Shown here: piece after piece, positions 17,268 through 54,434 of the stretch | Position numbering within the stretch: the first letter of the stretch is position 1 | How the letters are laid out: each line of letters opens with the position of its first letter | Assembly: GCA_028826165.1 (NCBI GenBank) | Contig: JAPDFW010000013.1 | Location: 19,107 to 83,106, forward strand | DNA length: 64,000 nucleotides | Origin: Anaeramoeba ignava BMAN | Taxonomy: Eukaryota > Protista > Anaeramoebae | Direction: 5' to 3' | Notes under the pieces: generated by a model | Told to the model about the DNA's origin: nothing | What the model saw: the letters and a program-made list of their open reading frames with translations, nothing else | Database searches by the model: none | Position numbers and translations under genes: made by a program

Positions 17268-17499
17268 TTTTGAAAAAGAAAAAAAATGAAAAAAATATTT
17301 TTTTTGGAATTTTTATTTTAATTTTAATTTTAATTTTAATTTTAATTTTAATTTTTAATTTTAATTTTAATTTTAATTTTAATTTTAATTTTTAATTTTA
17401 ATTTTAATTTTAATTTTAATTTTAATTTTAATTTTAATTTTAATTTTAATTTTAATTTTAATTTTGATTTTAATTTTAATTTTAATTTTAATTTTAATT

Positions 17500-19273
17500 T
17501 TAATTTTGATTATTAAATTTGTTAGTTAATAAATCAAATAAATTTGGATTTGTTTGATTTAATTGAAAATAATCAATTCCAATTTGAATTTCATCAATTA
17601 TTTCTTGTGTAATTTGAATTTCATCTTTAATTTGATTTGAATAAATCCAATATTCAAATATTTGAAATGATTTATTACTTAATTCACTATAATCTGTAAC
17701 TTTATTAGATTTATCTTCTGTTACAGATAAAAACATTCCTCGATATAATTCACTTCTCATTATTAATATTAATTTTGGAAATTTATATTGTTTTTCTTTT
17801 CTTTCAATAATAAAATCTTTTTCATTTTCATTTTCATTTTCATTTAAATAAATTCTTTTCATTGTTTCTTCAATTTTTTCATTTGAATTTATAATTTCTT
17901 TAATTTCAGAATATAATTTTGGATTTATTTTGGAATTGTTTGAATAAATCATTTCAAATATTTGATTTGATTCTTTAATTGATTTTTGAAATAATTTCTT
18001 GAAGTTTTTCAATTTGATTTTCATAATCTTTTAATCTATATTTCAATATTAATTTATGAGCTTCAATTATTTCTCCATTTTCGGTTTTAAATGAAATATC
18101 ACAAAATTCTTTTCTTCTAAATAATTTTATCAAATCTTCTTCAAGATTGGAAAAAGAAGGAGAATAATAAAGAAATGAATTATAAACTCCACAATGAACA
18201 TGATAATTAGAAATATTTTCATTAAATCTTAATTTAGGAAGTTCAATTTGAGTTGGAATCGGTTTATATTCTGTATCTCCAGTTCCTAATTCACCATTTA
18301 TATTTCTTCCAAATCCAATCAATTTCCCTTTTTCGGTTAAGATTAAAGTATTTTCATATCCAACAGAAAAATCAAGAATATTATCATCATTTTCAAATAA
18401 AGATGATTTGATTTCAAAAAAAGATGTGAGATATTCAGTTTGGCTATTTCCATTGAATTGAGGTTCACCACACGAATAAAGTTTTCTTTTTGGATTTTGA
18501 TTTTGATTTTCATCTTCAATTTCAATCAACATAACTGAATGCCAATTTCCTGTTTGAATATCAATTATTTTACCTTTTGGAATATTTTGGATTTTGGTTA
18601 ATTCTTTCATATTTTCTTCTTCTGTTTCTTTTATTTCTAATCCAACTTGACCATAGCAATTATATCCACATCCAAATAATTCTTGATTTGAATTTAAAAG
18701 AAAAACAGAATAAGAAGGAATTCCTGAAAATATTTTAGAAACATTTTTCATCATTAAAATTGGTTTTTCTGTTTTTTTAAATGTTTCAGAATCAAAACCA
18801 AGTTGAGCAAAAAAATTTGAACCAATTCCATAAGCATTTTGATTTGAAGTTAATAAGTAAATTGAATTATATCCAGAAACAACATCTTGAATTATTCTAT
18901 CATTTGTATCTTCAATTAATGATGAAATATTGATAAATTCTTTTGGATTTTTTGGATTAATATCTTTTCCTTTGGCAAATACATTTCCTTCTATTGTTAA
19001 AATAGCTTCATTTTGAACACCAACAGTTACTTTTTGAATATTTTCAATTTGGATTTTTTGAAGATTTTGTTTTGAATCATTTTGATTTAAATATTCTATT
19101 GCTTTTCCATTTTTAAAAAGGAAAATTGTTGAAAAATAACCTGATGCAATTTGTTTAATTTGTTTTTCATTTTCATTTTCAAATTTAAATTGAATTGGTT
19201 TTGTTATTTTATTTGGTTTATTTTTGATAAGTATTGGATATTGATTTAAACCAAAAAATAAGCAATCATTCAT
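17500..19273 (-). CDS. RCC1-BTB-BTB copy 4; indel near 17985
   Basis: ORFs 17975-19273 and 17500-18024 are the two halves of the paralog. Confidence 0.88.
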
Positions 19274-19533
19274 TTTTGAAAAGAAAAAAATGAAAAAATA
19301 ATTTTGAATTTTAATTTTAATTTTAATTTTAATTTTAATTTTAATTTTAATTTTAATTTTAATTTTAATTTTGATTTTAATTTTAATTTTAATTTTAATT
19401 TTAATTTTAATTTTAATTTTGATTTTAATTTTGATTATTAAATTTGTTAATTAATAAATCCAATAAATTTGGATTTGTTTGATTTAATTGAAAATAATCA
19501 ATTCCTCTTTTAATTTCATTAATAATTTCTTTT

Positions 19534-21326
19534 TTAAAAAATTAAGCATTTTTCTTTCTTTTGATTTTGATTATTAAATTTGTTAATTAATAAATCAAAT
19601 AAATTTGGATTTGTTTGATTTAATTGAAAATAATCAATTCCAATTTGAATTTCATCAATTATTTCTTGTGTAATTTGAATTTCTTCTTTAATTTGATTTG
19701 AATAAATCCAATATTCAAATATTTCAAATGATTTATTACTTAATTCACTATAATCTGTAACTTTATTAGAAGTATCATCTTTTACAGATAAAAACATTCC
19801 TCGATATAATTCACTTCTCATTATTAATATTAATTTTGGAAATTTATATTGTTTTTCTTTTCTTTCAATTATAAAATCTTTTTCATTTTCATTTTCATTT
19901 TCATTTAAATAAATTCTTTTCATTGTTTCTTCAATTTTTCATTTAAATTTATAATTTCTTTAATTTCAGAATATAATTTTGGATTTATTATTCTGTTTGA
20001 ATAAATCATTTCAAATATTTGATTTGATTTTTTAATTGATTTTTTTGAAATAATTTCTTGAAGTTTTTCAATTTGATTTTGATTTTGATTTAATCTATAT
20101 TTCAATATTAATTTATGAGCTTCAATTATTTCTCCATTTTTGGTTTTAAATGAAATATCACAAAATTCTTTTCTTTCAAATAATTTTATCAAATCTTCTT
20201 CAAGATTGGAAAAAGGAGAAGAATAATAAAGAAATGAATTACCATATCCACAAGAAACATGATAATTAGAAATATTTTCATTAAATCTTAATTTAGGAAG
20301 TTCAATTTGGATTGGAATTGATTGTTTTATGAAATCTCCAGTTCCTAATTCACCAAAAAAATTATCTCCAAATCCAATTAATTTCCCTTTTGATGTTAAA
20401 ATCAAAGTATGTTGATATCCAACAGAAAAATCAAGAATATTATCATCATTTTCAAATAAAGATGATTTGATTTCAGTAAATTCATAAATATCTTCATATA
20501 TTTTGCCAAGTCCATTAGATCGATAATCTCCACATGAATAAAGTTTTCTTTTTGGATTTTCATTTTCATCTTCAATCAACATTACTGAATTAGATCCGCA
20601 TTGAATATCAATTATTTTGCCTTTTGGAATATTTTGAATTTTGGTTAATTTTTGGATTTTTGTTTCTTCTTTTCTTGATTCTCCTAATCCAAGTTGAGCA
20701 AATTCATTATATCCGCATCCAAATAATTCTTGATTTGAATTTAAAAGAAAAACATGATTTGAATAATTTCCTGAAAATATTTTAGAAACATTTTTCATCA
20801 TTAAAATTGGTTTTTCTGTTTTTTTAAGTGTTTCAGAATCAAAAGCAAGTTGACCGTTATGATTTGAACCAATTCCATAAGTATTTTGATTTGAAGTTAA
20901 TAAGTAAATTGAACAAACACCAGAAACAATATCTTGAATTATTCTATCATTTGTATCTTCAATTAATGATGAAATATTAATAAATTCTTTTGGATTTTTT
21001 GGATTAATATCAATTCCTTTGGCAAATACATTTCCTTCTTTTGTTAAAATAGCTACATTGTGAGAGCTAACAGTTACTTTTTGAATATTTTCAATTTGGA
21101 TTTTTTGAGGTTTTTGATATGAATCATTTTCTTCTAAATATTGGATTGCTTTTCCATTTTTAAAAAGGAAAATTGTTGAGAAATAACCTGATGAAATTTG
21201 TTTAATTTGTTTTTCATTTTCATTTTCATTTTCAAATTTAAATTGAATTGGTTTTGTTATTGAATCTATTTCATTTTTGATAAGTATTGGAAATTGATTT
21301 GAACCAAAAAATAAGCAATCATTCAT
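19534..21326 (-). CDS. RCC1-BTB-BTB copy 5; CaaX tail; indel near 19937
   Basis: ORFs 19920-21326 and 19534-19923; ends QKKEKCLIF*. Confidence 0.88.
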
Positions 21327-21580
21327 TTTTGAAAAGAAAAAAATGAAAAAATGATTTTGCTTTTTATTTTAATTTTAATTTTAATTTTAATTTTAATTTT
21401 AATTTTAATTTTGATTTTAATTTTAATTTTAATTTTAATTTTAATTTTAATTTTAATTTTAATTTTAATTTTAATTTTAATTTTAATTTTAATTTTAATT
21501 TTAATTTTAATTTTAATTTTAATTTTGATTTTAATTTTAATTTTAATTTTTAATTTTTGATTTTGATTTTAATTTTAATT

Positions 21581-23359
21581 TTAATTTTGATTATTAAATT
21601 TGTTAATTAATAAATCAAATAAATTTGGGTTTGTTTGATTTAATTGAAAATAATCAATTCCTGTTTGGATTTCATCAATAATTTCTTGTGTAATTTGAAT
21701 TTCATCTTTAATTTGATTTGAATAAATCCAATATTCAAATATTTGAAATGATTTATTACTTAATTCACTATAATCTGTAACTTTATTTGATTTATCTTCT
21801 GTTACAGATAAAAACATTCCTCGATATAATTCACTTCTCATTATTAATATTAATTTTGGAAATTTATATTGTTTTTCTTTTCTTTCAATAATAAAATCTT
21901 TTTCATTTTCATTTTCATTTAAATAAATTCTTTTCATTGTTTCTTCAATTTTTTCATTTGAATTTATAATTTCTTTAATTTCAGAATATAATATTGGATT
22001 TATTATTCTGTTTGAATAAATCATTTCAAATATTTGATTTGATTCTTTAATTGATTTTTTTGAAATAATTTCTTGAAGTTTATCAATTTGATTTTCTTGA
22101 TTTTGATTTAATCTATATTTCAATATTAATTTATGAGCTTCAATTATTTCTCCATTTTCGGTTTTAAATGAAATATTACAAAATTCTTTTCTTTCAAATA
22201 ATTTTATCAAATCTTCTTCAAGATTGGAAAAAGAAGGAGGAGAATAATAAATAAATGAACTAAATCCTCCACAAGAAACATGATAATTGGAAACATCTTC
22301 ATTAAATCTTAATTCAGGAAGTTCAGTTTGGAATGGAATTGATGTATAACTGTAATCTCCAGTTCCTAATTGACCAGAATAATTACTGCCAAATACTATT
22401 AGTTTTGAATTTGAAGTTAAAATCAAAGTATGTGCATATCCAACAGAAAAATCAAGAATATTATCATCATTTTCAAATAAAGATGATTTGATTTCAGTAA
22501 ATTCATAAATATTTTCATCTTTGCCAAGTCCATTAAATTTATGATCTCCACATGAATAAAGTTTTCTTTTTGGATTTTGATTTTCATCTTCATCTTCAAT
22601 CAACATTATTGAATGAGAATATCCGCATTGAATACCAATTATTTTGCCTTTTGGAATATTTTGGATTTTGGTTAAATTTCGGATATATGCTTCTTTTCTT
22701 GATTCTCCTAATCCAAGTTGGCCAAATTGATTATCACCACATCCAAATAATTCTTGATTTGAATTTAAAAGAAAAACATGATTAGAATAGTTTCCTGAAA
22801 ATATTTTAGAAACATTTTTCATCATTAAAATTGGTTTTTCTGTTTTTTTAAGTGTTTCAGAATCAAAACCAAGTTGATCATATCGGTTTGAACCAATTCC
22901 ATAAGCATTTTGATTTGAAGTTAATAAGTAAATTGAATTTCTTCCAGAAACAATATCTTGAATTATTCTATCATTTGTATCTTCAATTAATGATGAAATA
23001 TTGATAAATTCTTTTGGATTATTTGAATTGATATCATATCCTTTTGCAAATACATTTCCTTCTTTTGTTAAAATAGCTTCATTTCCAGAACCAACAGTTA
23101 CTTTTTGAATATTTTCTTCAATTTGGATTTTTGAAGGATTTTGATTTGAATCATGGAGATATTCTATTGCTTTTCCATTTTTAAAAAGGAAAATTGTTGA
23201 GAAACTTGATGATGAAATTTGTTTAATTTGATTTTCATTTTCATTTTCATTTTCATTTTCATTTTCAAATTTAAATTGAATTGGTTTTGTTATTTTATTT
23301 GGTTCATTTTTGATAAGTATTGGATATTCATTTTGACCAAAAAATAAACAATCATTCAT
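21581..23359 (-). CDS. RCC1-BTB-BTB copy 6 (intact, 592 aa)
   Basis: Full paralogous ORF. Confidence 0.92.
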   Translation of the reverse strand: MNDCLFFGQNEYPILIKNEPNKITKPIQFKFENENENENENENQIKQISSSSFSTIFLFKNGKAIEYLHDSNQNPSKIQIEENIQKVTVGSGNEAILTKEGNVFAKGYDINSNNPKEFINISSLIEDTNDRIIQDIVSGRNSIYLLTSNQNAYGIGSNRYDQLGFDSETLKKTEKPILMMKNVSKIFSGNYSNHVFLLNSNQELFGCGDNQFGQLGLGESRKEAYIRNLTKIQNIPKGKIIGIQCGYSHSIMLIEDEDENQNPKRKLYSCGDHKFNGLGKDENIYEFTEIKSSLFENDDNILDFSVGYAHTLILTSNSKLIVFGSNYSGQLGTGDYSYTSIPFQTELPELRFNEDVSNYHVSCGGFSSFIYYSPPSFSNLEEDLIKLFERKEFCNISFKTENGEIIEAHKLILKYRLNQNQENQIDKLQEIISKKSIKESNQIFEMIYSNRIINPILYSEIKEIINSNEKIEETMKRIYLNENENEKDFIIERKEKQYKFPKLILIMRSELYRGMFLSVTEDKSNKVTDYSELSNKSFQIFEYWIYSNQIKDEIQITQEIIDEIQTGIDYFQLNQTNPNLFDLLINKFNNQN

Positions 23360-23692
23360 TTTTGAAAAGAAAAAAATGAAAAAATGATTTTTGGAACTTT
23401 TTTATTTTAATTTTAATTTTAATTTTAATTTTAATTTTAATTTTAATTTTAATTTTGATTTTAATTTTAATTTTAATTTTAATTTTAATTTTAATTTTGA
23501 TTTTAATTTTAATTTTAATTTTAATTTTAATTTTAATTTTGATTTTAATTTTAATTTTAATTTTAATTTTTAATTTTAATTTTAATTTTAATTTTAATTT
23601 TAATTTTAATTTTAATTTTTAATTTTTGATTTTAATTTTTAATTTTAATTTTAATTTTAATTTTAATTTTAATTTTAATTTTAATTTTAATT

Positions 23693-25501
23693 TTAATTTT
23701 GATTTTGATTATTAAATTTATTAATTAATAAATCAAATAAATTTGGATTTGTTTGATTTAATTGAAAATAATCAATTCCAATTTGAATTTCATTAATTAT
23801 TTCTTGTGTAATTTCAATTTCATTTTTAATTTGATTTGAATAAATCCAATATTCAAATATTTGAAATGATTTATTACTTAATTCACTATAATCTGTAACT
23901 TTATTTGATTTATCATTTGTTACAGATAAAAACATTCCTCGATATAATTCACTTCTCATTATTAATATTAATTTTGGAAATTTATATTGTTTTTCTTTTC
24001 TTTCAATAATAAAATCTTTTTCATTTTCATTTTCATTTTCATTTTCATTTTCATTTAAATAAATTCTTTTCATTGTTTCTTCAATTTTTTCATTTGAATT
24101 TATAATTTCTTTAATTTCTGAATATAATATTGGATTTATTTTGGAATTATTTGAATAAATCATTTCAAATATTTGATTAGATTCTTTAATTGATTTTGTT
24201 GAAATAATTTCTTGAAGTTTTTCAATTTGATTTTCATCTTTTAATCTATATTTCAATATTAATTTATGAGCTTTGATTATTTCTCCATTTTCGGTTTTAA
24301 ATGAAATATCACAAAATTCTTTTCTTCTAAATAATTTTATCAAATCTTCTTCAAGATTGGAAAAAGAGGAAAGAAAAGGAGAATAATAAAGAAATGAATT
24401 ATAATATCCACAAGAAATATGATAATTGAAAATATCTTCATTAAATCTTAATTTAGGAAGTTCAATTTGAAATGGAATTGATTGATAATTTGTATCTCCA
24501 GTTCCTAATTGTCCATAATAATTACTGCCAAATCCTATTAATTTTGAATTGGAAGTTAAAATTAAAGTATGAGCTCTTCCAACAGAAAAATCAAGAATAT
24601 TATCATTTTCAAATAAAGATGATTTGATTTCAGTAAATCCATAAGTATCTTCATCTTCATTTTTCCCAAGTCCATTATATTGAGAATATCCACATGAATA
24701 AAGTTTTCTTTTTGGATTTGGATTTTCATCTTCATTTTCAATCAAAATTATTGAATGAGAATATCCACATTGAATACCAATTATTTTGCCTTTTGGAATA
24801 TTTTGGATTTTGGTTAATTTTTGGATTTTTTCTTCTTTTCTTGATTCTCCTAATCCAAGTTGACCATATCTATTATCACCGCATCCAAATAATTCTTGAT
24901 TTGAATTTAAAAGAAAAATTGAATTTGAGAAAATTCCTGAAAATATTTTAGAAACATTTTTCATCATTAAAATTGGTTTTTCTGTTTTTTTAAGTGTTTC
25001 ATAATCAAAACCAAGTTGATCATATCGATTTGAACCAATTCCATAAGCATTTTGATTTGAAGTTAATAAGTAAATTGAATGAGCTCCAGAAACAATATCT
25101 TGAATTATTCTATCATTTTTATCTTCAATTAATGATGAAATATTAATAAATTCATTTGGATTTTCTGAATCAATATATTCTCCTTTGGCAAATACATTTC
25201 CTTCTATTGTTAAAATAGCTTCATTTTCAGAACCAACAGTTACTTTTTGAATATTTTCAATTTGGATTTTTGAAGGATTTTGATTTGATTCTTGGAGATA
25301 TTCTATTGCTTTTCCATTTTCAAAAAGGAAAATTATTGAAAACCCTGATGAAATTTGTTTAATTTGATTTTCATTTTCATTTTCATTTTCATTTTCATTT
25401 TCATTTTCAAATTTAAATTGAATTGGTTTTGTTATTATATCTTGTTCATTTTTGATAAGTTTTGGATATTTATTTTCACCAAAAAATAAACAATCATTCA
25501 T
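23693..25501 (-). CDS. RCC1-BTB-BTB copy 7 (intact, 602 aa)
   Basis: Full paralogous ORF. Confidence 0.92.
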   Translation of the reverse strand: MNDCLFFGENKYPKLIKNEQDIITKPIQFKFENENENENENENENQIKQISSGFSIIFLFENGKAIEYLQESNQNPSKIQIENIQKVTVGSENEAILTIEGNVFAKGEYIDSENPNEFINISSLIEDKNDRIIQDIVSGAHSIYLLTSNQNAYGIGSNRYDQLGFDYETLKKTEKPILMMKNVSKIFSGIFSNSIFLLNSNQELFGCGDNRYGQLGLGESRKEEKIQKLTKIQNIPKGKIIGIQCGYSHSIILIENEDENPNPKRKLYSCGYSQYNGLGKNEDEDTYGFTEIKSSLFENDNILDFSVGRAHTLILTSNSKLIGFGSNYYGQLGTGDTNYQSIPFQIELPKLRFNEDIFNYHISCGYYNSFLYYSPFLSSFSNLEEDLIKLFRRKEFCDISFKTENGEIIKAHKLILKYRLKDENQIEKLQEIISTKSIKESNQIFEMIYSNNSKINPILYSEIKEIINSNEKIEETMKRIYLNENENENENENEKDFIIERKEKQYKFPKLILIMRSELYRGMFLSVTNDKSNKVTDYSELSNKSFQIFEYWIYSNQIKNEIEITQEIINEIQIGIDYFQLNQTNPNLFDLLINKFNNQNQN

Positions 25502-25867
25502 TTTTAAAAAGAAAAAAAAATTATTTTTGAAAAATTTATTTTTGGAATTTTAATTTTAATTTTAATTTTGATTTTAATTTTAATTTTAATTTTAATTTTA
25601 ATTTTAATTTTAATTTTAATTTTAATTTTAATTTTAATTTTAATTTTAATTTTAATTTTAATTTTAATTTTAATTTTAATTTTAATTTTAATTTAAATTT
25701 AATTTTAATTTTTAATAAAATTTTAAAATTTTAATTTTTTTAATTTGTTTGATTTATTTTAATTGAAAATAATCAGTTTAAATTTTAATTTTGATTATTA
25801 AATTTGTTAATTAATAAATGTTTCTTTGATTTAATTTTAATTTCAATTTCATCTTTATTATTTGATT

Positions 25868-27526
25868 TCAATTTTTAATTTGATTTGAATAAATCCAATA
25901 TTCAAATATTTGAAATGATTCTTCACTTAATTCACTATAATCTGTAACTTTGTTAGAAGTATCATCTTTTACAGATAAAAACATTCCTCGATATAATTCA
26001 CTTCTCATTATCAATATTAATTTTGGAAATTTATATTGTTTTTCTTTTCTTTCAATTATAAAATCTTTTTCATTTTCATTTAAATAAATTCTTTTCATTG
26101 TTTCTTCAATTTTTTCATTTAAATTTATAATTTCTTTAATTTCAGAATATAATTTTGGATTTATAATTCTGTTTGAATAAATCATTTCAAATATTTGATT
26201 AGATTCTTTAATTGATTTTTTTGAAATAATTTCTTGAAGTTTTTCAATTTGATTTTGATTTTGATTTTGATTTAATCTATATTTTAATATTAATTTATGA
26301 GCTTTGATTATTTCTCCATTTTTGGTTTTAAATGAAATATCACAAAATTCTTTTCTTCTAAATAGTTTTATCAAATCTTCTTCAAGATTGGAAAAAGAAG
26401 GAGAAGAATAATAAAGAAATGAATTTTCATATCCACAAGAAAGATGATAATTAGATATATCAATATTATCGGTCAATAGTAATTTAGGAATCTTTCCTTT
26501 CACAGGAATTGAATGTTCTTTTGTATCTCTAGTCCCTAATTGGCCAAACTGATTATCTCCGAATCCTATTAATTTCCCTTTGGAAGTTAAAATCAAAGTA
26601 TGAGCTCTTCCAACAGAAAAATCAAGAATATCATCATCATTTTCAAATAAAGATGATTTGATTTCAGTAAATTCTCTTGTATCTTCATTTTTGCCAAGTC
26701 CATTATAATGACAATTTCCACATGAATAAATTTTTCTTTTTGGATTTTCATTTTGATTTTCATTTTCAATTAACATTATTGAATAAGCATGCCCACATTT
26801 AATATCAATTATTTTGCCTTTTGGAATATTTTGGATTTTGGTTATCTCTCCAGTTATTGGTTGGGGTGTTCTTCCTAATCCAAGTTGGCCAAAATAATTA
26901 TATCCGCATCCAAATAATTCTTGATTTGAATTCAAAAGAAAAACTGAATTTATAAAACTTCCTGAAAATATTTTAGAAACATTTTTCATCATTAAAATTG
27001 GTTTTTCTCTTTTTTTACCCCAAACTTCAGTATCACATCCAATTTGACCATATTGATTTGAACCAAAGCCATAAGCATTTTGATTTGAAGTTAATAAATA
27101 AATTGTTTCAGAACCAAAAACAATATCTTGAATTATTCTATCATTTGGATCTTCAATTAATGATGAAATATTAATAAATTGATACAGGTTTTTTTGGTCG
27201 ATATTTTCGCCTTTTGCAAATACATTTCCTTCTATTGTTAAAATAGCTTCATTTCTATAAAATCCTACAGTTACTTTTCGAATATTTTCAATTTGGATTT
27301 TTCTTGCATTTTGTTTTGATTCTTTTAAATATTTAATTGCTTTTCCATTTTTAAAAAGGAAAATTGTTGCAAAACTTGATGATGAAATTTGTTTAATTTG
27401 TTTTTCATTTTCATTTTCATTTTCATTTTCAAAATTAAATTGAATTGATTTTTTTATTATTTCTTTTGTTTCATTTTGTAAAAGTTTTGGAAATTTATTC
27501 CAACCAAAAAAGAAATTTTGATTCAT
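25868..27526 (-). CDS. RCC1-BTB-BTB copy 8 (most divergent; 3' end truncated or degenerate)
   Basis: 552 aa, stops at SNQIKN*. Scrambled remnants of the normal 3' end (DYFQL, LLINKFNNQN) lie at 25745-25865. Confidence 0.8.
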   Translation of the reverse strand: MNQNFFFGWNKFPKLLQNETKEIIKKSIQFNFENENENENEKQIKQISSSSFATIFLFKNGKAIKYLKESKQNARKIQIENIRKVTVGFYRNEAILTIEGNVFAKGENIDQKNLYQFINISSLIEDPNDRIIQDIVFGSETIYLLTSNQNAYGFGSNQYGQIGCDTEVWGKKREKPILMMKNVSKIFSGSFINSVFLLNSNQELFGCGYNYFGQLGLGRTPQPITGEITKIQNIPKGKIIDIKCGHAYSIMLIENENQNENPKRKIYSCGNCHYNGLGKNEDTREFTEIKSSLFENDDDILDFSVGRAHTLILTSKGKLIGFGDNQFGQLGTRDTKEHSIPVKGKIPKLLLTDNIDISNYHLSCGYENSFLYYSSPSFSNLEEDLIKLFRRKEFCDISFKTKNGEIIKAHKLILKYRLNQNQNQNQIEKLQEIISKKSIKESNQIFEMIYSNRIINPKLYSEIKEIINLNEKIEETMKRIYLNENEKDFIIERKEKQYKFPKLILIMRSELYRGMFLSVKDDTSNKVTDYSELSEESFQIFEYWIYSNQIKN

Positions 27527-33905: not shown

Positions 33906-33966
33906 CTTTGTGTTCGAAAATCTCAATCCAAAAAAAAGGTTTCTTGAGATTTTGTCATATACAAAG
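33906..33966 (-). promoter_or_regulatory. SECIS element in the 3' UTR of the SelK-like gene
   Basis: CTTTGT-at-ATGAC-AAAATCTCAA-gAAA-CC(T8)GG-a-TTGAGATTTT-CGAA-c-ACAAAG: helix I, AUGA/GA quartet, perfect 10-bp helix II, apical AAA with mini-stem. Confidence 0.9.
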
Positions 33967-34057
33967 AAAGAAAAAAAGAAAGAGAAAATCATTTTAAAAT
34001 TTTAAAAAAAAAAGAAATTACTAAAAAGGATTAAATCTGAATTAGAAAAAATCCTTT

Positions 34058-36208
34058 TTAGCAATTTCCCCCACCTCATCCACCACCACCACTAAAGAAA
34101 GAAAGTGTAGAAAATGAATTTCGTCGATTTTGTGGAATTGGTTGTTGTCTAGGTTGAGGTCTTGTTTCATCTGGTTCTTCATAAAATAAAGTTTGTAAAC
34201 TAAAAATTTATAATTAAATTTATAATTAAATTTATAATTAAATTTATAATTAAATTTATAATTAAATTTATAATTAAATTTATAATTAAATTTATAATTA
34301 TATTTATAATAAATTTATAATTAAATTTATAATTAAATTTATAATTAAATTTATAATTAAATTTATTATTATAATTATAATAAAATTAATAATTAAATTT
34401 ATAATTAAATTTATAATCAAATTTATAATTAAATTTATAATTATATTTATAATTAAATTTATAATTAAATTTAAAATTAAATTTATAATTAAATTTATAA
34501 TTAAATTTGTAATAAAATTTATAATTATATTTTATAAACAAAATTTATAATTAAATTTATAATTAAATTTATAATTAAATTTATAATTAAATTTATAATT
34601 ATATTTATAATAAAATTAATAATTAAATTTATAATAAAATTAATAATTAAATTTATAATAAAATTTATAATTAAATTTATAATTAAATTTATAATTAAAT
34701 TAATAATTAAAATTTATAATAAAAATTTAAATATATAATTAAAATTATAATTAAATTTATAATTAAATTTATAATTAAACTTATAATTAAATTTATAATT
34801 AAATTTATAATTAAATTTATAATTAAATTTATAATTAAATTTAATTAAATTTATATTTTATATAATTAAAATTATAATTAAAAATATAATTAAATTTATA
34901 ATTAAATTTATAATTATATTTTATAATTAAATTTATAATAAAAATTTATAATTAAATTTATAATTAAATATATAATTAAACTTATAATTAAAATATATAA
35001 TTAAATTTATAATTAAATTTATAATTATATTTATAATTAAATTTATAATTAAATTTATAATTAAATTTATAATTAAATTTATAATTAAATTTATATAATT
35101 AAATTTATAATTAAAATTATAATTAAATTTATAATTAAATTTATAATTAAATTTATAATTAAATTAATTAAATTTATAATTAAATTTATAATTAAATTTT
35201 ATAATTAAATTAATAATTAAATTTATAAAAAATTTATAATAAAATTTATAATTATATTTATAAACAAAATTTATAATTAAATTTATAATTAAATTTATAA
35301 TTAAATTTATAATTAAATTTATAATTAAATTTATAATTAAATTTATAATTAAATTTAAAACTAAATTTATAATAAAATTAATAATTAAATTAATAATTAA
35401 ATTTATAATAAAATTTATAATTAAATTTATAATATTTATAATTAAATTTATAATTAAATTTATAATTAAATTTAAATTTATAATTAAATTTATAATAAAA
35501 TTTATAATTAAAATATATATTTATATTTATAATTAAATTTATAATTAAATTTATAATTAAAAATATAAAATTTATAATTAAATTTATAATTAAATTTATA
35601 ATTAAATTTATAATTAAATTTATAATTAAATTTATAATTAAATTTATAATTAAATTTATAATTTATTTATAATTATATTTATAATTAAATTTATAATTAA
35701 ATTTATAATTAAATTTATAATTAAATTTATAATTAAATTTATAATTAAATTTATAATTAAAATTTATAATTAAATTTATAATTAAATTTATAATTAAATT
35801 TATAATTAAAATTTATAATTAAATTTATAATTAAATTATATTTTATAATTAAATTTATAATTAAATTTATAATTAAATTTATAATTAAATTTATAAACAA
35901 ATTTATAATTATATTTATAATTAAATTTATAATTAAATTTATAATTAAATTTATAATTAAATTTATAATTAAATTTATAATTATATTTATAATTAAATTT
36001 ATAATTAAATTTATAATTAAATTTATAATTATATTTATAATTAAATTTATATTAAAATTTATAATTAAATTTATAATTAAATTGTTTACAAAATTTTTAA
36101 AAATTGTAAAATGGCTAATAAAATGTTTTGTATTTTTGTAAAAATTCTTGATTCATTTGATTCTGTTCTTGTTTGTTGTGGAAAAACTTTTCTTCTATTA
36201 TTTTCCAT
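34058..36208 (-). CDS. SELENOK: Selenoprotein K-like (86 aa); exons 36208-36090 and 34199-34058; UGA-Sec at 34078-34076
   Basis: MENNRRKVFPQQ..RIFTKIQNILLAILQFLKIF|LQTLFYEEPDETRPQPRQQP..FSGGG-TGA-GGGNC-TAA: single hydrophobic helix with 'FLQTLF', Pro/Arg-rich tail, GGU near the C-terminus, and a downstream SECIS. Confidence 0.85.
34200..36089 (-). repeat. 1.9-kb intron composed of a 12-bp quasi-palindromic repeat (AATTTATAATTA)n
   Basis: GT at 36089 and TAG at 34202-34200 on the minus strand; the interior is almost purely the 12-mer. Confidence 0.85.
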
Positions 36209-36315
36209 TTATAAAAAAAATAATTGAAAAAAAAAATGAAAAAAATGAAAAACAAAATCATTTTGAATTTTATTTGTTTTTTTTTTTGAAAAGAAAAAAA
36301 AAGGAAAAAAATTTA

Positions 36316-36397
36316 TTTTTAATAATCATTGACTTTCAGAAAATATTCTTCCAAAGATTTCAAATATTTCCTTCATTTGTTCAACAATTATTAAAAA
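36316..36397 (-). promoter_or_regulatory. SECIS element in the 3' UTR of the SelW/Rdx gene
   Basis: TTTTTAATAATTGTTGA-acaa-ATGAA-GGAAATATT-tgAAA-TCTTTGGAAGA-ATATTTTC-TGAA-ag-TCAATGATTATTAAAAA: long helix I, AUGA/GA core, helix II, AAA apical motif. Confidence 0.88.
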
Positions 36398-36506
36398 TTG
36401 GAAAAAAAAATGTGGCTTTTATGTTGAAAGATTGTTTGAGAAATGAAAAAAGAAAAAGAAAAAGAAAGAAGAAGAAATGTTCAGTTTTTTTTTGATTTGA
36501 ATTTGT

Positions 36507-38312
36507 TTACTTTTCTTTTTCTTCTTTTTCTTCTTTTTTTTCTTTTTGAGATTCTAAATGTTTTTCAATAAGAGTAACAAGTTCTTCAGGTTCTGGATAT
36601 CTTCCTGTTTTTTTACGTGAAAAAATGAGTGTTCCATCATCAAGATGTACTTCAAACAAATATCCTGAATGTCCGTGTTTTGGAGCAACTGTATATCCTT
36701 TTTCTTTTAATCCATTAGCCACCCAAAGGTATCGTCCAAAGATACCTCATCCTATTTTAAAATTATTATTAAAATTATTATTAAAATTAATTATTATTAA
36801 AATTATTATTAAAATTATTATTAAAAATTATTATTAAAATTATTATTAAAATTATTATTAAAATTATTATTAAAATTATTATTAAATTTATTATTAAATT
36901 TATTATTAAAATTATTATTAAAATTATTATTAAAATTATTATTAAATTTATTATTAAATTTATTATTAAATTTATTATTAAATTTATTATTAAATTTATT
37001 ATTAAAATTATTATTAAATTTATTATTAAAATTATTATTAAAATTATTATTAAAATTATTATTAAAATTATTATTAAAATTATTATTAAAATTATTATTA
37101 AAATTATTATTAAAATTATTATTAAATTTATTATTAAATTTATTATTAAAATTATTATTAAATTTATTATTAAAATTATTATTAAAATTTATTATTAAAA
37201 TTATTATTAAATTTATTATTAAATTTATTATTAAATTTATTATTAAAATTTATTATTAAAATTTATTATTAAAATTATTATTAAAATTATTATTAAAATT
37301 TATTATTAAATTTATTATTAAATTTATTATTAAATTTATTATTAAATTTATTATTAAATTTATTATTAAAATTGTTATTAAATTTATTATTAAATTTATT
37401 ATTAAATGATTATTAAATTTATTATTAAATTTATTATTAAATTTATTATTAAAATTATTATTAAAATTATTATTAAAATTATTATTAAAATTATTATTAA
37501 ATTTATTATTAAAATTATTATTAAATTATTATTGAATTTATTATTAAATTTATTATTAAAATTATTATTAAAATTATTATTAAAATTATTATTAAAAATT
37601 ATTATTAAAATTATTATTAAATTTATTATTAAAATTATTATTAAAATTATTATTAAAATTTATTATTAAATTTATTATTAAATTTATTATTAAAATGATT
37701 ATTAAAATTTATTATTAAAATTTATTATTAAAATTATTATTAAAATTATTATTAAAAATTATTATTAAAATTTATTATTAAATTTATTATTAAATTTATT
37801 ATTAAAATTATTATTAAAATTATTATTAAAATTATTATTAAATTTATTATTAAAATTATTATTATATTTATTATTAAATTTATTATTAAATTTATTATTA
37901 AATTTATTATTAAATTTATTATTAAAATTATTATTAAATTTATTATTAAATTTATTATTAAATTTATTATTAAATTTATTATTAAAATTATTATTAAAAT
38001 TATTATTAAATTTATTATTAAAATTATTATATTTATTATTAAAATTATTATTTATTATTAAATTTATTATTAAAATTATTATTAAATTTATTATTAAATT
38101 TGTTATTAAAATTATTATTAAAATTATTATTAAATTTATTATTAAAATTATTATTAAAATTATTATTAAATTTATTATTAAAATAGATTGCTAATTGATT
38201 GGGGAGATTTGGTTAAATTATTAATTTTAATTGATTTTAATTTTGAGAACTTTAATTGAGATTAATTTTTGATTGTTGATTTACCTCCACAATAAGTAAT
38301 TATGACTTTCAT
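36507..38312 (-). CDS. SELENOW: Rdx-family selenoprotein (SelW-like, 90 aa); exons 38312-38285 and 36751-36507; UGA-Sec at 36749-36747
   Basis: MKVIITYCGG|-TGA-GIFGRYLWVANGL..GYLFEVHLDDGTLIFSRKKTGRYPEPEELVTLI gives a CxxU thioredoxin-like motif plus the Rdx G.FEV..L+.S+..G.+P signature; SECIS downstream. Confidence 0.9.
36752..38284 (-). repeat. 1.5-kb intron composed mostly of a 13-bp repeat (plus strand ATTATTATTAAAA / TTTATTATTAAAT)
   Basis: GTAAAT donor at 38284, TAG acceptor at 36752; repeat spans about 36760-38182. Confidence 0.85.
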
Positions 38313-39433: not shown

Positions 39434-41697
39434 ATGGATTCTTGGTCAACGTAATAAAAGAATAAAAGAATAAAAAATTTAAATTTGCATAAAAAATAAC
39501 TCAAATAAATTTATTAAGAAATTTAAAAATTTAAAAATTAAAAAAATTTAAAAAAAAATTTTAAAAAAAAAAAAGAATTGAATCTGATCCTGGAGTTTTC
39601 ACTGAAATGATAGAAGGATTTGGAGTTGTAAAAGATCAAATTCAAGCCGAAGAATTGTTTTCATTTGATGAAGAATCATTCAATGATTTGCAGTAATTTT
39701 TAAAAAAATCAAATTAAAAAACGAAATAAAAAATCAAATTAAAAAATGAAATTAAAAAAAATCAAAAATGAAATTAAAAAATTTTTTTCTTTTTTAAATT
39801 TCTTAGACCCATTTATGGCCTTGTTTTTCTTTTTAAATGGGATCCCAAATTACACATTGTTAATAAAGGAACTGTTGTAGATCCTCCTGATGAGGTTTTT
39901 TTTGCGAAACAAATAGTTCAAAATGCATGTGCGACTCAAGCTATTTTATCTATTTTATTGAATCTTGAAAACAGTTTTCCTGAAATTGATATTGGTACTC
40001 ATCTTACTAATTTCAAGAGTTTTACGAAAGATTTTCCTCCTGATGTATTTATTAAATAAATATAAAAATTAAAATCAAAATTAAAATCAAAATTAAAAAT
40101 TAAAATCAAAAATTAAAATTAAAATTAAAATTAAAATTAAAATTAAAATCAAAATCAAAAATTAAAATCAAAATTAAAATTAAAATTAAAATTAAAATTC
40201 ATTTATAAAATCAAAATCAAAATCAAAATTAAAATTCATTTATAAAATTAAAATTAAAATCAAAATTAAAATTAAAATTAAAATTAAAATTAAAAAAATA
40301 AAAAAAATCAAAATCAAATCAAATCAAAAATTAAAATTAAAATTAAAATTAAAATTAAAATTTAAAATCAAAATCAAAATTAAAATTAAAATTAAAAATC
40401 AAAATTAAAATCAAAATTAAAATCAAAAATTAAAATTAAAATTAAAATTAAAATTAAAATTAAAATTAAAATTAAAATTAAAAATTAAAATCAAAATCAA
40501 AATCAAAAATCAAAATCAAAATCAAAATTAAAAATTAAAATTAAAATTAAAATTAAAATTCATTTATAAAATTAAAATTCATTTTATAAAATTAAAATTA
40601 AAATCAAAATTAAAATTAAAATTAAAATTAAAATTAAAATTCATTTATAAAATTAAAATTAAAATTCAAAATCAAAATCTAAAATTAAAATTAAAATTAA
40701 AAATTCATTTATAAAATTAAAATTAAAAATCATTTATAAAATTAAAAATTAAAATTAAAATTAAAATTAAAATTAAAATTAAAATTAAAATTAAAATTCA
40801 TTTATAAAATTAAAATTCATTTATAAAATTAAAATTAAAATTAAAATTCATTTATAAAATTAAAATTAAAATTAAAATTCATTTATAAAATTCATTTATA
40901 AAATTAAAATTCATTTATTAAAATTTAAATAGTTAAAAGGAAATGCAATTGGAGATCATGATTTATTCCGAGAAGTTCATAACAATTTCGCAAGACCAGA
41001 ACCATTCATTTACGAACAAGGAGATGAAGACGACGCAGACGATAGCGAATTATATCACTTTGTATCATTTCTACCAATTAACGGAATCCTTTTTGAATTT
41101 GATGGATTAAAATCTGGACCAATTCTTCATGAAAATTGCACACTTGAAAATTGGACAGAAGTTGCAAGAAAAGTTATTATTGAAAGAACACAAATGTTTG
41201 GAACAGAAATTAGATTCAATTTAATGGCAATTGTCAAAAATAGAGTCACTGTTTTGAATGAAAAAATCAACGAATTGAAATCTCAAAAAGAAAAAATTAC
41301 TGATGATAATGAATCTGCTTTAAGTGAAATTGATTCAGAACTTGAAACTCTCGAAATTTTATTATCAAGTGAAGAAGATAAAAGAAAAAATTGGAAAATC
41401 GAAAATGTTCGAAGACAACATAATTATATTCCTTTTTTCATTAACTTGCTTAAGATTTCTGCTCAAAATGGTTTTTTGGAAAATATGGAAAAGAAAGCAA
41501 AACAAGAAGCTGAATTAAAAGAAATGCAAGAAAAATCAAAAGAAAAAGATGAAAAAGAAAAATCAAATGAAGATGAAAAAAAAGATGAGAAAGAAAAAGA
41601 TAATCAAATGGATCAAGAAAAAAAAGAAGATGAAAAAGAAAAAGATGATGAAAAAGATAATCAAATGGATCAAGAAAAAAAAGATGATGATCAATAA
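39434..41697 (+). CDS. UCHL5: Ubiquitin C-terminal hydrolase UCH37/UCHL5; exons 39434-39450, 39576-39692, 39807-40044, 40933-41697
   Basis: MDSWST|IESDPGVFTE..PIYGLVFLFKW..FAKQIVQNACATQAILSILLN..HNNFARPE..YHFVSFLPINGILFEFDGLKSGP..EIRFNLMAIV..WKIENVRRQHNYIPF. Confidence 0.95.
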
Positions 41698-48710: not shown

Positions 48711-51375
48711 ATGAAATCAATTCTTTTCTTTTCCTTTTTCTTAATTTTCAATATTTACTTAATTAAATCGATTCAAAATGATCCAAAATACATTTCATCT
48801 TCTAAATCATCAAAACTAATATTAAAAGAAACAGAAACAGAAACAACAACAAAATATTATCCTTCTCTAAATGAAGTTTTTTTTTGGCGTTTAATATCTA
48901 ATTTTTCAGGTTCAGGATATTTTGGATATTCTGTTTCAATTTATAAAAATGTTCTTGTTATTGGAACTTATTATGCAGATCAAGCATTTATTTACAGATA
49001 TAATGGAACAAATTGGAATCATGAACAAACTTTGAATGAATCAAGTTCAAATTTTGGATATTCTGTTTCAATTTATGAAGATGTTATTGTTGTTGGGACT
49101 TCTGGTGCAAATCAAACATTTATTTACAGATATAATGGAACAAATTTTATTCTTGAACAAATCTTGAATCAATCAGCTAAATATTTTGGATATTCTGTTT
49201 CAATTTATGGCAATGTTCTTGTTGTTGGTGCATATAATGGAACAATTTGGAATCAAGAACAAATATTGAATGAATCAGCTTCATATTTTGGATATTCTGT
49301 TTCAATTTATGAGAATGTTACTGTTATTGGAGCTTATTATGCCAAAAAAGTATTTATTTACAGATATAATGGAACAAATTGGAATCAAGAACAAATATTG
49401 AATGAATCAGCTTTATATTTTGGATTTTCTGTTTCAATTTATGGCAATGTTCTTGTTATTGGAGCTTGGAGTGCCAAACAAGTATTTATTTACAGATATA
49501 ATGGAACATGGAATAAAGAACAAATATTGAATGGATCAGCTTTATATTTTGGATCTTCTGTTTCAATTTATGATAATGTTATTGTTGTTGGAGCTTATGG
49601 TCAAAATCAAACTTTAATTTACAGATATAATGGAACTATTTGGAATCAAGAACAAATTTTGAATGGATCAGTTCCTTATTTTGGATATTCTGTTTCAGTT
49701 TATGAAAATTTTACTGCAATTGGAGCTTTTATTGCAAATCAAGCATTTGTTTATGAATTTATACAAATTCCTCAAGTTATTCTTGTTAATTGTTCATCTT
49801 TGTTTTCATCATTTGATTGTTATTGGAATAAAATTGAATTAGTGAATTTGAAATATCAAATCAAGTATCAGTATCGTTGGGTTGATATTCAATCTCCAAT
49901 TCTTGAAGATGATAATGTTTATTATCAATTATTTAATTCTTCAAATTATGTTAATATTACTGGAAATGAATTTTATTCAATTCAAATCAAAGCTTGTGAT
50001 GCATCATCAATTAAATGTGGTGAACCTTCTTCTTTCATTAATTTAACAACAAAAATTGATTCTGTAAAAGATTTCCAATTAACAAATGCAAATTCTTCAA
50101 TTAATGTGACTTGGAATCCTCCTAATGTTAAAATTAATGAAGGAATTGCTCATCTTGATCATTATAACCTTTCTCATTTCAATCAATCTCAACCTGATTC
50201 AATATCTTTCGTTTCAGTTGCTAATTCTTCACTTTCTTATTTTTTGAATAATTTAAAATGTGGAAATGATTATAATATTTCAATTTGTGGATGTAGAACA
50301 CTTAAATGTCAAGGAAATGATAAAGGAGAAGTTGTTGATTCATTAATTTCATTATTATTTGAAAAAGTTGGAAATTTAACATGTTCAATTTCAAATTCAA
50401 TCGATATTAATTGTAATTGGAATCAACCAATTAATTGTTCAACTCCATCTTATTATAATTTTACTTATCAATCAATTTCTCAAAATGATTCAGGAAATTA
50501 TCAACCAATATCATCAAATCAACAATTCACAGCTCAAATTCCAAATCAACAATATCAAATCAATGTATCAGCATGTAATTCAAATGATAAATGTGGATAT
50601 ATTTCAACAATTTCAATTACAACTGATAATTTACCAATAGCTCCAACAATTTATGAAACAATTTCCAAAATTGAAGAAATTGAATTTAATTTCACAAAAT
50701 TAACAAATGCAAATAATTATTCAATTTCACTTAATAATGAAACAAATTGGCAAAAATTCACATCTCTTGATTTAAGTGGAAATGAAATAATTGGAATCAT
50801 AAGTGGAATACCAGGAAATGTTGAATATAATATTTCAATTAGAGGATGTTCAGATTTAAATTGTGAAACACCATATTTAGGATTACCAAGTTCAATTATT
50901 TCAACAAGAGCTAAATTAGGAAATATTACTTCATTAAATTGCATATCATTAATTAATGGATTTGAATGTAGTTGGGATTCATTAATTTTATCAAGTGGAT
51001 TAAAAGCATATTCATTTCATTTCAATTCAATATCAATTTGTTTATCAAAAACAACAAATTTTCATTCAGAATCAGGATTAAATGGAGGAGAATATTATGA
51101 AATTTCAATTTATTCATCAGCTGATTTAAATTGTTTAATTTAATGAATATTCAGGAATTAATTCAAAAACATCAATTACAACATTATCTCCAACTGAATC
51201 AAAAGAAAGTTCCTCAAAAACTTCAATCATAATTATATCAATCCTTTTGTCTATTTTAATAACAGGAATTATTATAGTTATTATTGTTATTATTAAAAAA
51301 AAACGCACTCCAAAAATCATTTTTCAAGAAGAGAACAAAGAACTTGAACCTTTAACAGACATTGAATTACTTTAA
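48711..51375 (+). CDS. FG-GAP/FN3 surface protein copy B (indel near 51140)
   Basis: 810-aa ORF plus frameshifted TM and tail ending LTDIELL*. Confidence 0.85.
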
Positions 51376-51760
51376 ATAATATTATGATATTTCTTCATTT
51401 CTTTTCAAAAATAAAATTAAAATCAAAATTTAAAATTAAAATTTAATTTTTTTAATAAGATCATTTTTTTCTTTTTCAATTCCCTTTTTTTTGTTTCTTT
51501 TCTTATTTTCTTTTATTTTATTTTATTTGCATCTCTATTATTCTAAATTTACAATCACACACTAAATTTAATATTAAAAGTAAAAAATTTATAACAAAAA
51601 AACACACAAATTTGATTTTTTTTTGATTTTTGATTTTTATTTGATTTTTAATAAATAATTTTAATAATCTTAGTTCTTCTGAAAAAAAAACAAAAAAAAA
51701 TTTTTGTTTTGATTTTTTTGATTTATTTCTTTTTTTAAAAAATAATAAAATAGGGAAAAA

Positions 51761-54434
51761 ATGAAAACAATTCTTTTAATTGTCTTAATAATCCAAGTTA
51801 TTTTGATTGAATCAATCCAATCTGAACAATTAATAACAACAAGACATTATTCTTCAGGGGAAGAGAATTATGCTTGGAATTTAATCAGTACATTTTCAGA
51901 ACTTTCTGCATATTATGGATCTAGTGTTTCAGTTAAAGGAAATGTTCTTGCTATTGGAGATGCTGGATTAAGTCAAACATCCATTTACAGATATAGCGGA
52001 ACAAATTTTAATCTTGAACAAACTTTGGACGGACCTTCAAGTTCAAGTTTTGGATATTCCGTTTCAGTTTCTGAAAATGGAACTATTCTTGCTGTTGGCG
52101 CGTTGAATTCAGATCAAGCATTTATTTACAGATATAATGGAACTATTTGGAATCAAGAAGTGATTTTGAATGGAACTGTGAATTCTCGTTTTGGATCAAG
52201 TATTTCAGTTTCGGAAGAGGTACTTGTTGTCGGTGCTCAAGATCCAAGTCAAGGATTGATTTACATATTCAATGGAACTGATTGGAATTACGAACTTTTT
52301 TTGAATGGATCTTCAGGATCTGAATCGAGTGTTTCAGTTTCGGGAAATCAAACAAGAAATGCTATTGTTGTTGGATCTTCTGCTGCAAATCAAGTTGTTG
52401 TGTTTAGATACGATGGAGCTTCCTTCAATTTTGAAGACGCTTTGTCGGGATCTTCAGGTTTTGGATCTAGTGTTTCAGTTTCTGAAAATGGAACTCTTCT
52501 TGCTGTTGGAGCTTCGAATGCAAAACAAGCATTTATTTACAGATATAATGGAACATGGAATCAAGAACAAATATTGAATGGATCAACTCCAAGTTTTGGA
52601 TCTTCTGTTTCAATTTATGGAAATGTTCTTGTTATTGGAGCTTATTCTGCAGATCAAGCATTTATTTACAGATATAATGGAACTATTTGGAATCAAGAAC
52701 AAACTTTGGATGGATCAAGTTCAGGATTTGGTCATTCTGTTTCAATTTATGAAAATTTTACTGCTGTTGGAGCTCCCGATTCAAGTCAAGCATTTGTTTA
52801 TGAATTTATGCAGATTCCTCAAGTTAATATTCTTAATTGTTCATCTTTGTTTTCATCATTTGATTGTTATTGGGATCAAATTGAATTAGCGAATTTGAAA
52901 TATCAAATCAATTATGGATTTGGTTGGATTGGTATTGAATCTCCAATTCTTGAAGATGGGAATGTTTATTATCAATTATTTAATTCTTCAATTTATGATA
53001 ATATTACTGGAAATGAATTTTATTCAATTCAAATCAAAGCTTGTGATGTATCATCAACTAAATGTGGTGAATCTTCTTCTTTCATTAATTTAACAACAAA
53101 AATTGATTCTGTAAAAGATTTCCAATTAACAAATGCAAATTCTTCAATTTGTGTGACTTGGAATCCTCCTAATGTTCAAATTAATTTAGGAATTGCTCAT
53201 CTTGATCATTATAATCTTTCTCATTTCAATGAATCTCAACCTGATTCGATATCTTTCGTTTCACTTGTTAATTCTTCATTTTTTTATTTTTTAACCCATG
53301 TGGAATGTGAAAATTATTATAATATTTCAATTTGGGGATGTAGAACACTTGAATGTGAAGGAAATGATAAAGGAGAAGTTGCTAATTCATTAATTTCATT
53401 ATTATTTGGAGAAGTTGGAAATTTGGCATGTTCAATTTCAAATTTAATAGATATTAATTGTAATTGGAATCAACTAATTAATTGTTCAACTCCATCTTAT
53501 TATAATTTTACTTATCAATCAATTTCTCAAAATGATTCAGGAAATTATCAACCAATATCATCAAATCAACAATTTACAGCTCAATTTACAAATCAAGAAT
53601 ATCAAATCAATGTATCAGCATGTAATTCAGATGGAAAATGTGGATATATTTCATCAATTTCAATTACAACTGATAATTTGGCTGCTCCAATAATTTATGA
53701 AACAATTTCTAAAATTGAAGAAATTGAATTTAATTTCACAAAATTAACAAATGCAAATAATTATTCAATTTCACTTGATAATGGAACAAATTGGCAAAAA
53801 TTCACATCTCTTGATTTAAGTGGAAATGAAATAATTGGAATCATAAGTGGAATACCAGGAAATGTTGAATATAATATTTCAATTCGAGGATGTGCAGATT
53901 TAAATTGTGAAACACCATATTTAGGAGAACCAAGTTCAATTATTTCAACAAGAGCTAAATTAGGAAATATTACTTCATTAAATTGCATATCATTAATTAA
54001 TGGATTTATTTGCACTTGGCATCCATTAATTTTATCAGAAGGATTAAAAGCATATTCATTTACTTATAATTCAATATCAATTTGTTTATCAGATTCACTA
54101 GCAGCTCATTATTTACTTACAGGATTAAATGGAGGAGAATATTATGAAATTTCAATTTATTCATCAGCTGATTTAAATTGTTCATTTAATGAATATTCAG
54201 GAATTAATTCAACAACATCAGTTACAACATCATCTCCCAACTGAACCATGTCAACAAAGTGATAACTCAACGAACACAACAGCTATTACTGTTGGAGTAA
54301 TTGTTCCTATTGTTGTTATTGCGGCTTTTATTATTGGAGTTATTTTATTTAAGAAAAAGAGAAAAAAATCCAAAAATTCAAACAAAAAAGAAAAAGAAAA
54401 AGAAAAAGAACTTCATAATGATTTGGATCTTTAA
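51761..54434 (+). CDS. FG-GAP/FN3 surface protein copy C (indel near 54238)
   Basis: 827-aa ORF plus TM AITVGVIVPIVVIAAFIIGVILF in ORF 54189-54434. Confidence 0.85.

Follow-up and report, generated by a model that had tools for sequence, protein, structure and literature searches.

Does the in-frame TGA at positions 36747-36749 (minus strand) of a 64,000-nucleotide (nt) stretch of the Anaeramoeba ignava BMAN genome (GCA_028826165.1, contig JAPDFW010000013.1; this whole stretch is called the window below, and its positions are used unless a contig or locus is named) end translation, or is it read as selenocysteine (Sec, U) in a gene of the SelW/Rdx family whose redox motif is split by a repeat-filled intron? 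Anaeramoebae are free-living anaerobic metamonads housing sulfate-reducing symbionts, and A. ignava, an anaerobic marine amoeba within the Metamonada, has a genome of 80.65% A+T with introns of 91.86% A+T (PMC11550330). Judged by sequence comparison, the locus is very probably a functional nuclear gene of A. ignava encoding a 90-residue cytosolic SelW-like selenoprotein with an Rdx fold.

We read the exon-intron structure of the gene on the minus strand. Coding exon 1 (38285-38312) comprises 9 codons beginning with ATG and the first base of a Gly codon (ATG AAA GTC ATA ATT ACT TAT TGT GGA G; ATG at 38312-38310, end at 38285), giving MKVIITYCG + G-, the beta-1 strand plus the Cys-Gly-Gly of a CGGU motif. 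It is followed by a phase-1 GT..AG intron (36752-38284; 1533 nt, 1.8% GC) with the donor GTAAAT at 38284 and the acceptor AATAG, nearly all of which is filled by a tandem array of 119 copies of the 12-nt unit TATTATTAAAAT (letters of the plus strand; 36753-38184; Tandem Repeats Finder, 92% matches, score 2267). AG dinucleotides were found at intron positions 34, 93 and 1532 only, and the last of these (36753-36752) is the expected acceptor because it is the first AG after 1439 AG-free nt. Coding exon 2 (36507-36751) opens with GA TGA GGT ATC and continues after the TGA for 79 open codons (GIFGRYLWVANGLKEKGYTVAPKHGHSGYLFEVHLDDGTLIFSRKKTGRYPEPEELV...), covering the Rdx body and a Lys/Glu-rich tail, to a TAA at 36509-36507. 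A second AG (36746-36747), present because the TGA adjoins a G-initial codon, lies 6 nt 3' of the acceptor; it is the acceptor of the GenBank model, and its use deletes Gly-Sec in frame. Exon 1, the donor at 38284, the acceptor at 36752 and the sequence GA-TGA-GGT-ATC lie exactly where the original prediction had placed them.

The exon-2 frame has no Met after the TGA and is therefore unable to start translation by itself, and the frame of exon 1, if left unspliced, meets a stop after 16 codons. Joined, the exons read TGT GGA G|GA TGA, or C-G-G-U, which places a CxxU motif after the first beta strand, and the reading derived from both of them, MKVIITYCGG-U-GIFGRY..., is 10 + 1 + 79 = 90 residues long, U being residue 11. 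The SelW subfamily has about 85-95 amino acids (aa), a CxxU within the first ~13 residues, no signal peptide and no hydrophobic insert or stretch, and the product agrees with it in all of these features.

We searched the exon-2 peptide against Pfam and found a match to Rdx (PF10262) of 31.6 bits (cut-off 22.6; E 2e-7) over profile positions 16-73 of 74, in agreement with the SelW/Rdx body predicted to follow the TGA. The alignment begins at residue 6 of the peptide, and the unmatched profile positions 1-15 leave room, with no gap, for K2..G10 of exon 1, U and GIFGR; inside the GenBank protein KAJ5080130.1, which is described below, the exon 1 residues align to the profile from position 1 onward. 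A six-frame Rdx search of the organism's own genome gave 30.5 bits at this gene. The score against NCBIfam TIGR02174 (CXXU_selWTH) was 33 bits, slightly below the cut-off of 34.2, which is no surprise for a peptide that lacks the CxxU end. The best matches among the sequences of solved structures were 2FA8 (Atu0228; E 0.002) and 2LJK (C17orf37/MIEN1; E 0.04), both of which we take to be Rdx-fold proteins, and the nearest named protein-atlas clusters were "Rdx family" and "Selenoprotein W family". A word-indexed homologue search with the exon-2 peptide found nothing.

Downstream of the stop codon, and in the same exon, we located a candidate SECIS (selenocysteine insertion sequence) within the 3' untranslated region (UTR; 36327-36385, minus strand), with AUGA at 36376-36373, an apical AAA at 36360-36358 and the 3' GA at 36337-36336. 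The TAA precedes it by 121 nt and the UGA by 371 nt; the longer stem begins ~113 nt past the stop, its outer part reaching to about 36320-36393, which fits the predicted hairpin ~110 nt past the TAA with an AUGA/GA quartet and an apical AAA. Using cmscan, the Rfam model SECIS_1 (RF00031) was matched over its full length (model positions 1-64) at 36328-36385 with 26.4 bits. The minimum free energy fold reached -16.4 kcal/mol compared with -8.9 ± 2.2 for shuffled sequences (z = -3.5) and has an 11-bp helix 2. The structural features of a SECIS are present, namely an AUGA..GA core, a helix 2 of ~10-11 bp, an unpaired apical AAA, and a location in the 3' UTR on the gene's strand. On both strands of the window SECIS_1 gave two matches only, each directly 3' of an open reading frame (ORF) with a family-typical in-frame TGA, a placement that goes beyond coincidence. 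Across the genome it gave at least 5 matches, and each of the 5 is situated 3' of a candidate gene (3 by Rdx genes, 1 by a thioredoxin reductase ending GCUG*, 1 by a small unassigned ORF).

We also built a leave-one-out covariance model from 7 other Anaeramoeba SECIS elements, with the present element excluded. This model scored the element at 40.2 bits (E 2.5e-4), with 22.1 bits for the top non-SECIS match in the window, and genome-wide it ranked the element higher than one of its own training members. In the 7 aligned elements ATGA and AAA are invariant, and compensatory changes were found in 9 of 9 helix-2 pairs. A scan of the 3' UTR for bacterial promoters and terminators found nothing, a type of scan that is not relevant here.

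Relatives of the gene were collected from A. ignava by a six-frame Rdx search of the genome, which yielded four loci, and by SECIS searches, which found further ones, bringing the Rdx family in this genome to at least 6 members. A TGA occupies the equivalent place in three paralogues (C137, C1 and C71) and in a homologue from Anaeramoeba flamelloides. The split motif itself, TGT GGN G|gt..ag|GA TGA, is conserved at the same intron position and phase in C137 and C1, each of which has a SECIS.

The closest paralogue, C137 (L014:953-1659; L007:1501-1562), is ~64% identical over the body and reads ATG CAA GTC TCA ATC ACA TTT TGT GGT G | GTAAAT...AATAG | GA TGA GGA ATC, giving MQVSITFCGG-U-GIYGEF..., whose exon 1 aligns to MKVIITYCG gap-free. 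It shares the exon-intron plan, the phase and the junction (GATGAGG, identical) with the gene in the window, and differs from it in its intron, a 443-nt AAAATT repeat unrelated to the 12-nt array, and in the higher Rfam score of its SECIS (39.5 bits, above the gathering score; ~140 nt past the stop). In C1 (L011, reverse strand, about 850-1560) we read ATT GAA TTT TGT GGA G | gt..ag | GA TGA TCC, or ...IEFCGG|intron|U-SDSRTARTL..., with a signal-peptide-like first exon, one further intron and a SECIS of 21 bits with Rfam and 37 bits with the species model; its TGA is not skippable in frame because no AG follows it. C71 (L012:1498-1730, SECIS at 1838-1897, 20 bits with Rfam and 46 bits with the species model) is a single exon reading MNVHIEFCLV-U-NYDPEF..., with a full-length Rdx match that spans the TGA. 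The N-terminus encoded by exon 1 aligns gap-free with MNVHIEFCLV-U, and BLASTP of the exon-2 peptide against C71 aligned the low-complexity tail only, the relationship being one at the profile level. The A. flamelloides homologue (JAOAOG010000234.1; L023:3001-3570) encodes MSILIKYCSG-U-G..., all of CSGU falling within exon 1, and its intron lies 3' of the Sec codon whereas that of A. ignava lies inside the motif; with a GG|GTATGT donor, the protein is equal in length to the A. ignava one through ...EKGYTV. Its SECIS (SECIS_1, 25.3 bits) is of the GUGA type and lies ~140 nt past the stop.

Two further Rdx-like loci were noted in these searches. C78 (L015, reverse strand, 1011-1720) has an exon 1 reading ...RVCIFLELG-U-CK before a 24-nt-repeat intron, and its motif G-U-C is unusual in having no Cys three residues upstream of U; its 3' UTR holds an ATGA...TGA hairpin candidate, and an Rfam SECIS search found no match in the examined locus. 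On contig C66 (505577-505638, minus strand; L028), a SECIS of 44 bits with the species model lies 3' of an Rdx-like ORF reading ...KG-U-RQNGLSKRIKDDLSKKGYSV....

The comparison with relatives bears on whether exon 1 belongs to the gene at all. Exon 2 could be part of another transcript with a different upstream exon or start, MKVIITYCGG being a chance match, a suspicion invited by the mere 28 coding bases of exon 1 and by an RNA junction that is not directly seen. We consider this extremely improbable, since the 1.4 kb separating the exons are pure repeat with no ORF, two paralogues share this short exon together with its boundary, A. flamelloides has the same N-terminus, the Rdx profile accepts exon 1 as its positions 1 onward, and an independent gene caller took the identical exon and donor.

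Substitutions relative to C137 bear on a second question, namely whether the gene is a decaying or silent paralogue in which the TGA works as an ordinary stop, with SECIS and exon 1 left over as relics. Over the 62 alignable codons after the TGA, exon 2 has a nonsynonymous rate (dN) of 0.29 and a synonymous rate (dS) of 0.85 (dN/dS ~0.34), and over its 9 codons exon 1 has a dN of 0.21 and a dS of 0.97. By this measure purifying selection acts on both exons, whose silent sites are close to saturation; the TGA, splice sites and SECIS core have all been retained. One of at least six family members could be redundant, and the modest Rfam score of the SECIS would suit a relic, but a dN/dS of ~0.3 in both exons, the intact start, donor, acceptor, frame, stop and SECIS core, and contigs in exact agreement with the exon, found at high word depth in a run of unrecorded kind and in a sediment metatranscriptome library make a pseudogene highly improbable.

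Those contigs were aligned to positions 36250-36800. Among the sequencing runs considered, one alone, of unrecorded kind, contained over a fifth of the words sampled, and the shares of the others were small. One contig of 215 nt came from this main run and one of 176 nt from the sediment metatranscriptome library; both match exon 2 with zero differences, and in both runs contigs matching the exon exactly occur at high word depth. Both carry the TGA and AGGATGAGG (AG-GATGAGG). With TGA, and no differing letter, in contigs of two runs, a TGT or TGC hidden by a sequencing or assembly error, which the original prediction had named as a possible refutation, is excluded. The presence of AGGATGAGG in both contigs also misfits an acceptor at +6.

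How the gene stands in the public record was established by an exhaustive profile-free search, which retrieved KAJ5080130.1 ("selenoprotein t [Anaeramoeba ignava]", 163 aa), 100% identical to the exon-2 peptide and reading MKVIITYCGG-IFGRY...KEEKEEKEK-RKVFPQQ...SFFSGGGG. In this model the gene caller independently chose the identical exon 1 and donor, took the second AG (36747-36746) as the acceptor, thereby deleting Gly-Sec, spliced out the TAA and the entire 3' UTR via the GT in AA|GTAAAC, and ran into the next gene, ending at the in-frame TGA of that SelK-like gene. Pfam places Rdx at residues 2-70 (profile positions 1-73, 34.4 bits) and a weak SelK_SelG at 107-163. KAJ5080130.1 is a chimera of two separate selenoprotein genes in which both Sec codons are avoided, which is the kind of error that standard gene callers had been predicted to make here. 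The reading given above corrects this record, and the models of the paralogue and of A. flamelloides are also wrong: KAJ5066207.1 (C137) avoids the TGA via another AG 36 nt downstream, with the loss of 12 residues, and KAJ6237998.1 (81 aa) and KAJ3443578.1 (111 aa) of A. flamelloides have wrong N-termini that avoid it in two further ways.

The GenBank model might still be right, the intron running to 36747-36746 and the protein being a Sec-less ...YCGG-IFGRY..., perhaps fused to the SelK-like ORF. KAJ5080130.1 has precisely this second-AG structure, the join is in frame, and GATGAG is also found in the C137 paralogue. Such a protein, however, loses the second redox residue of the family-defining CxxC/U. 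The TGA is dodged differently in the C137 model and in the two A. flamelloides models, and this inconsistency looks like ORF-keeping by a gene caller and not like biology. C1 is without a second AG, and C71 has no intron at this place and keeps its TGA. A fusion would splice out a SECIS of 40 bits (species model) and end at the neighbour's Sec codon, AGGATGAGG in contigs of two runs is not expected from a +6 splice, and the upstream AG is the acceptor expected after a 1.4-kb AG-free intron. We regard the GenBank structure as very unlikely.

The SelK-like neighbour lies in tandem directly downstream (33906-36208, minus strand), with its ATG at 36208, a donor GT at 36089, a 1.9-kb intron containing another 12-nt array, and an acceptor at 34200. 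Its protein ends ...SFFSGGGG-U-GGGNC* (TGA 34079-34077, TAA 34060-34058); SECIS_1 matches at 33906-33966 with 31.9 bits, and the Pfam SelK_SelG match is weak (E 0.013).

A recoded UGA calls for Sec machinery, and the original prediction held that the organism has a working eukaryotic set. In the genome we found a tRNA-Sec (70.3 bits; called as SeC with anticodon TCA by ARAGORN), SepSecS (404 bits; best homologues ~52% identical), a three-exon SPS2/SelD with its own Sec site (KMKG-U-SCKLPQ), and the fourth domain of eEFSec (49.6 bits, a match given by 0 of 14 prokaryotic control genomes). A second gene of the KTI12 family is PSTK-like, its best NCBIfam model being TIGR03575 (eukaryotic PSTK; E 1.6e-20, below the equivalog cut-off). 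An Rfam SECIS search near the SPS2 gene gave no match in the examined locus, and a search of the PDB with the PSTK candidate gave no matches. These machinery genes, together with the TGA and SECIS found in paralogues and in A. flamelloides, support the prediction that UGA is read as Sec.

Two other loci of the genome carry SECIS matches. The thioredoxin reductase (L008, C2:449778-449840) ends ...KKTGC-U-G* and has a SECIS of 32 bits, with a 3'-UTR microsatellite between stop and SECIS. On contig C73 (332204-332265, minus strand; L009), a SECIS of 29 bits with Rfam and 51 bits with the species model follows a short ORF that contains candidate in-frame TGA codons and matches none of the families checked; this ORF may be an unassigned small selenoprotein.

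On the SelW-like reading, the pre-mRNA would be spliced from GT 38284 to the first AG (36753-36752), removing the 1533-nt repeat intron, and the joined TGT GGA G + GA TGA GGT would make the mRNA encode Cys-Gly-Gly-Sec-Gly. The UGA would be recoded as Sec through the SECIS 121 nt past the TAA by the organism's own tRNA-Sec, PSTK, SepSecS, SPS2 and eEFSec and, presumably, an SBP2-like factor. The CxxU, placed where helix 1 of a thioredoxin-like fold begins, may then act as a thiol/selenol redox centre, as in other proteins of the SelW family. We infer the use of this acceptor in vivo, the insertion of Sec and the redox function from these features.

Several observations weigh against this reading. 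No reads show the junction, and the match of both contigs ends at 36753, 3 nt before the repeat mask. With a spliced mRNA the match would break off at precisely 36753, since ..GGAG is the end of exon 1 and ..ATAG that of the intron, and a DNA contig should keep matching as far as the repeat mask at 36757; the contig ends are compatible with splicing and also with aligner trimming of a DNA contig, and are not decisive. The Rfam score of the SECIS is below the gathering score of 35, with a window-wide E of 0.71. Only 1 of the 8 Anaeramoeba SECIS elements examined scores above 35 bits with Rfam, and the sub-threshold score reflects the AT-rich lineage, not a missing feature; the Rfam threshold under-calls SECIS elements in an 80% A+T genome. 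The family searches for this gene were made exon by exon, and the machinery search took in tRNA-Sec, SepSecS, SPS2, eEFSec and PSTK. Finally, the second in-frame AG 6 nt downstream could yield a Sec-less isoform, and public annotation uses that AG.

The acceptor pair TAG|GATGAG|GT, found identically in C137, could even be a switch in which the upstream AG gives the CGGU form and the downstream AG a selenium-free form lacking Gly-Sec. Such a switch might operate, for example, in selenium shortage, but we think it quite unlikely. More likely than such a switch is a lineage-specific expansion that gave Anaeramoeba at least 6 Rdx-fold selenoproteins.

Compared with known systems, the proposed A. 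ignava selenoprotein is close to vertebrate SELENOW/SelW1, also a cytosolic Rdx-fold protein of ~9-10 kDa with CxxU near the N-terminus and a 3' UTR SECIS. Vertebrate SelW shares the body motifs G..FEV and ..SKK/SRKK..G..P, but direct sequence similarity is low, with profile-level matches only, and the mammalian motif is YCGAU where A. ignava has YCGGU. Neither Atu0228 nor MIEN1, the best solved-structure matches, has the A. ignava gene structure; bacterial SelW-like forms either use Cys or carry a SECIS of the bacterial type within their coding region, and MIEN1 has Cys in place of Sec. Selenoprotein T is likewise a CxxU protein of the Rdx superfamily, but it is about twice as long, and it carries a signal peptide and, within its Rdx domain, a hydrophobic insert, both of which are lacking here; the extra length of the "selenoprotein t" record is due to its fusion to the SelK-like neighbour. 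In mammalian SelW the first coding exon supplies 9 residues and ends just upstream of CxxU (PMC3316567), so that a very short first coding exon is common to both. The A. ignava intron lies inside the motif (phase 1, codon of the second x), ~2 1/3 codons 3' of the mammalian site, and the gene further differs in having 2 coding exons instead of 5, a 1.5-kb 12-nt-array intron, a Lys/Glu-rich tail, and a SECIS in the exon of the stop.

The selenoprotein families found most widely in Sec-using eukaryotes include SelW and SelK (PMC2375036), and standard pipelines are well known to mis-annotate selenoproteins (PMC3753652). The gene is thus a new mis-annotated member of a well-known family; its kind, its recoding mechanism and the type of mis-annotation are textbook, and the finding is useful for annotation and unsurprising in kind. 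Among metamonads the Sec pathway has been reported from Spironucleus salmonicida and from the Preaxostyla Paratrimastix pyriformis, Trimastix marina and Monocercomonoides exilis (PMC10703272). The text of the Anaeramoeba genome paper (PMC11550330) contains zero words beginning "seleno", and a 2026 preprint lists two tRNA-Sec genes in A. pumila as its sole basis for Sec use (10.64898/2026.04.11.717937), beyond which we found nothing in the literature on Sec use in Anaeramoeba. The present locus provides gene-level evidence for Sec use in Anaeramoebae and indicates a fairly large selenoproteome, not described before for this lineage, with at least 6 Rdx-fold genes, a SelK-like gene, a GCUG thioredoxin reductase and SPS2.

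A few minor observations were made along the way. A ciliate-type genetic code was rejected in view of the long standard-code ORFs filling the window, and matches to microRNA families at 36441-36549 were rejected as low-complexity AG/CT repeats of high bias. Elsewhere in the window, Pfam identified an array of RCC1-BTB paralogues at 11495-27526 (minus strand), an ankyrin-repeat ORF at 6166-8565 and FG-GAP/fn3 ORFs at 48711-54244, and a weak match resembling a box C/D small nucleolar RNA (snoMe28S-Cm3227; 31 bits, E 1.1) was seen at 41294-41359 (plus strand). The nuclear small-subunit ribosomal RNA (L016, C26:17366-19631) is 2266 nt long compared with 1831 model positions and contains sizeable expansions.

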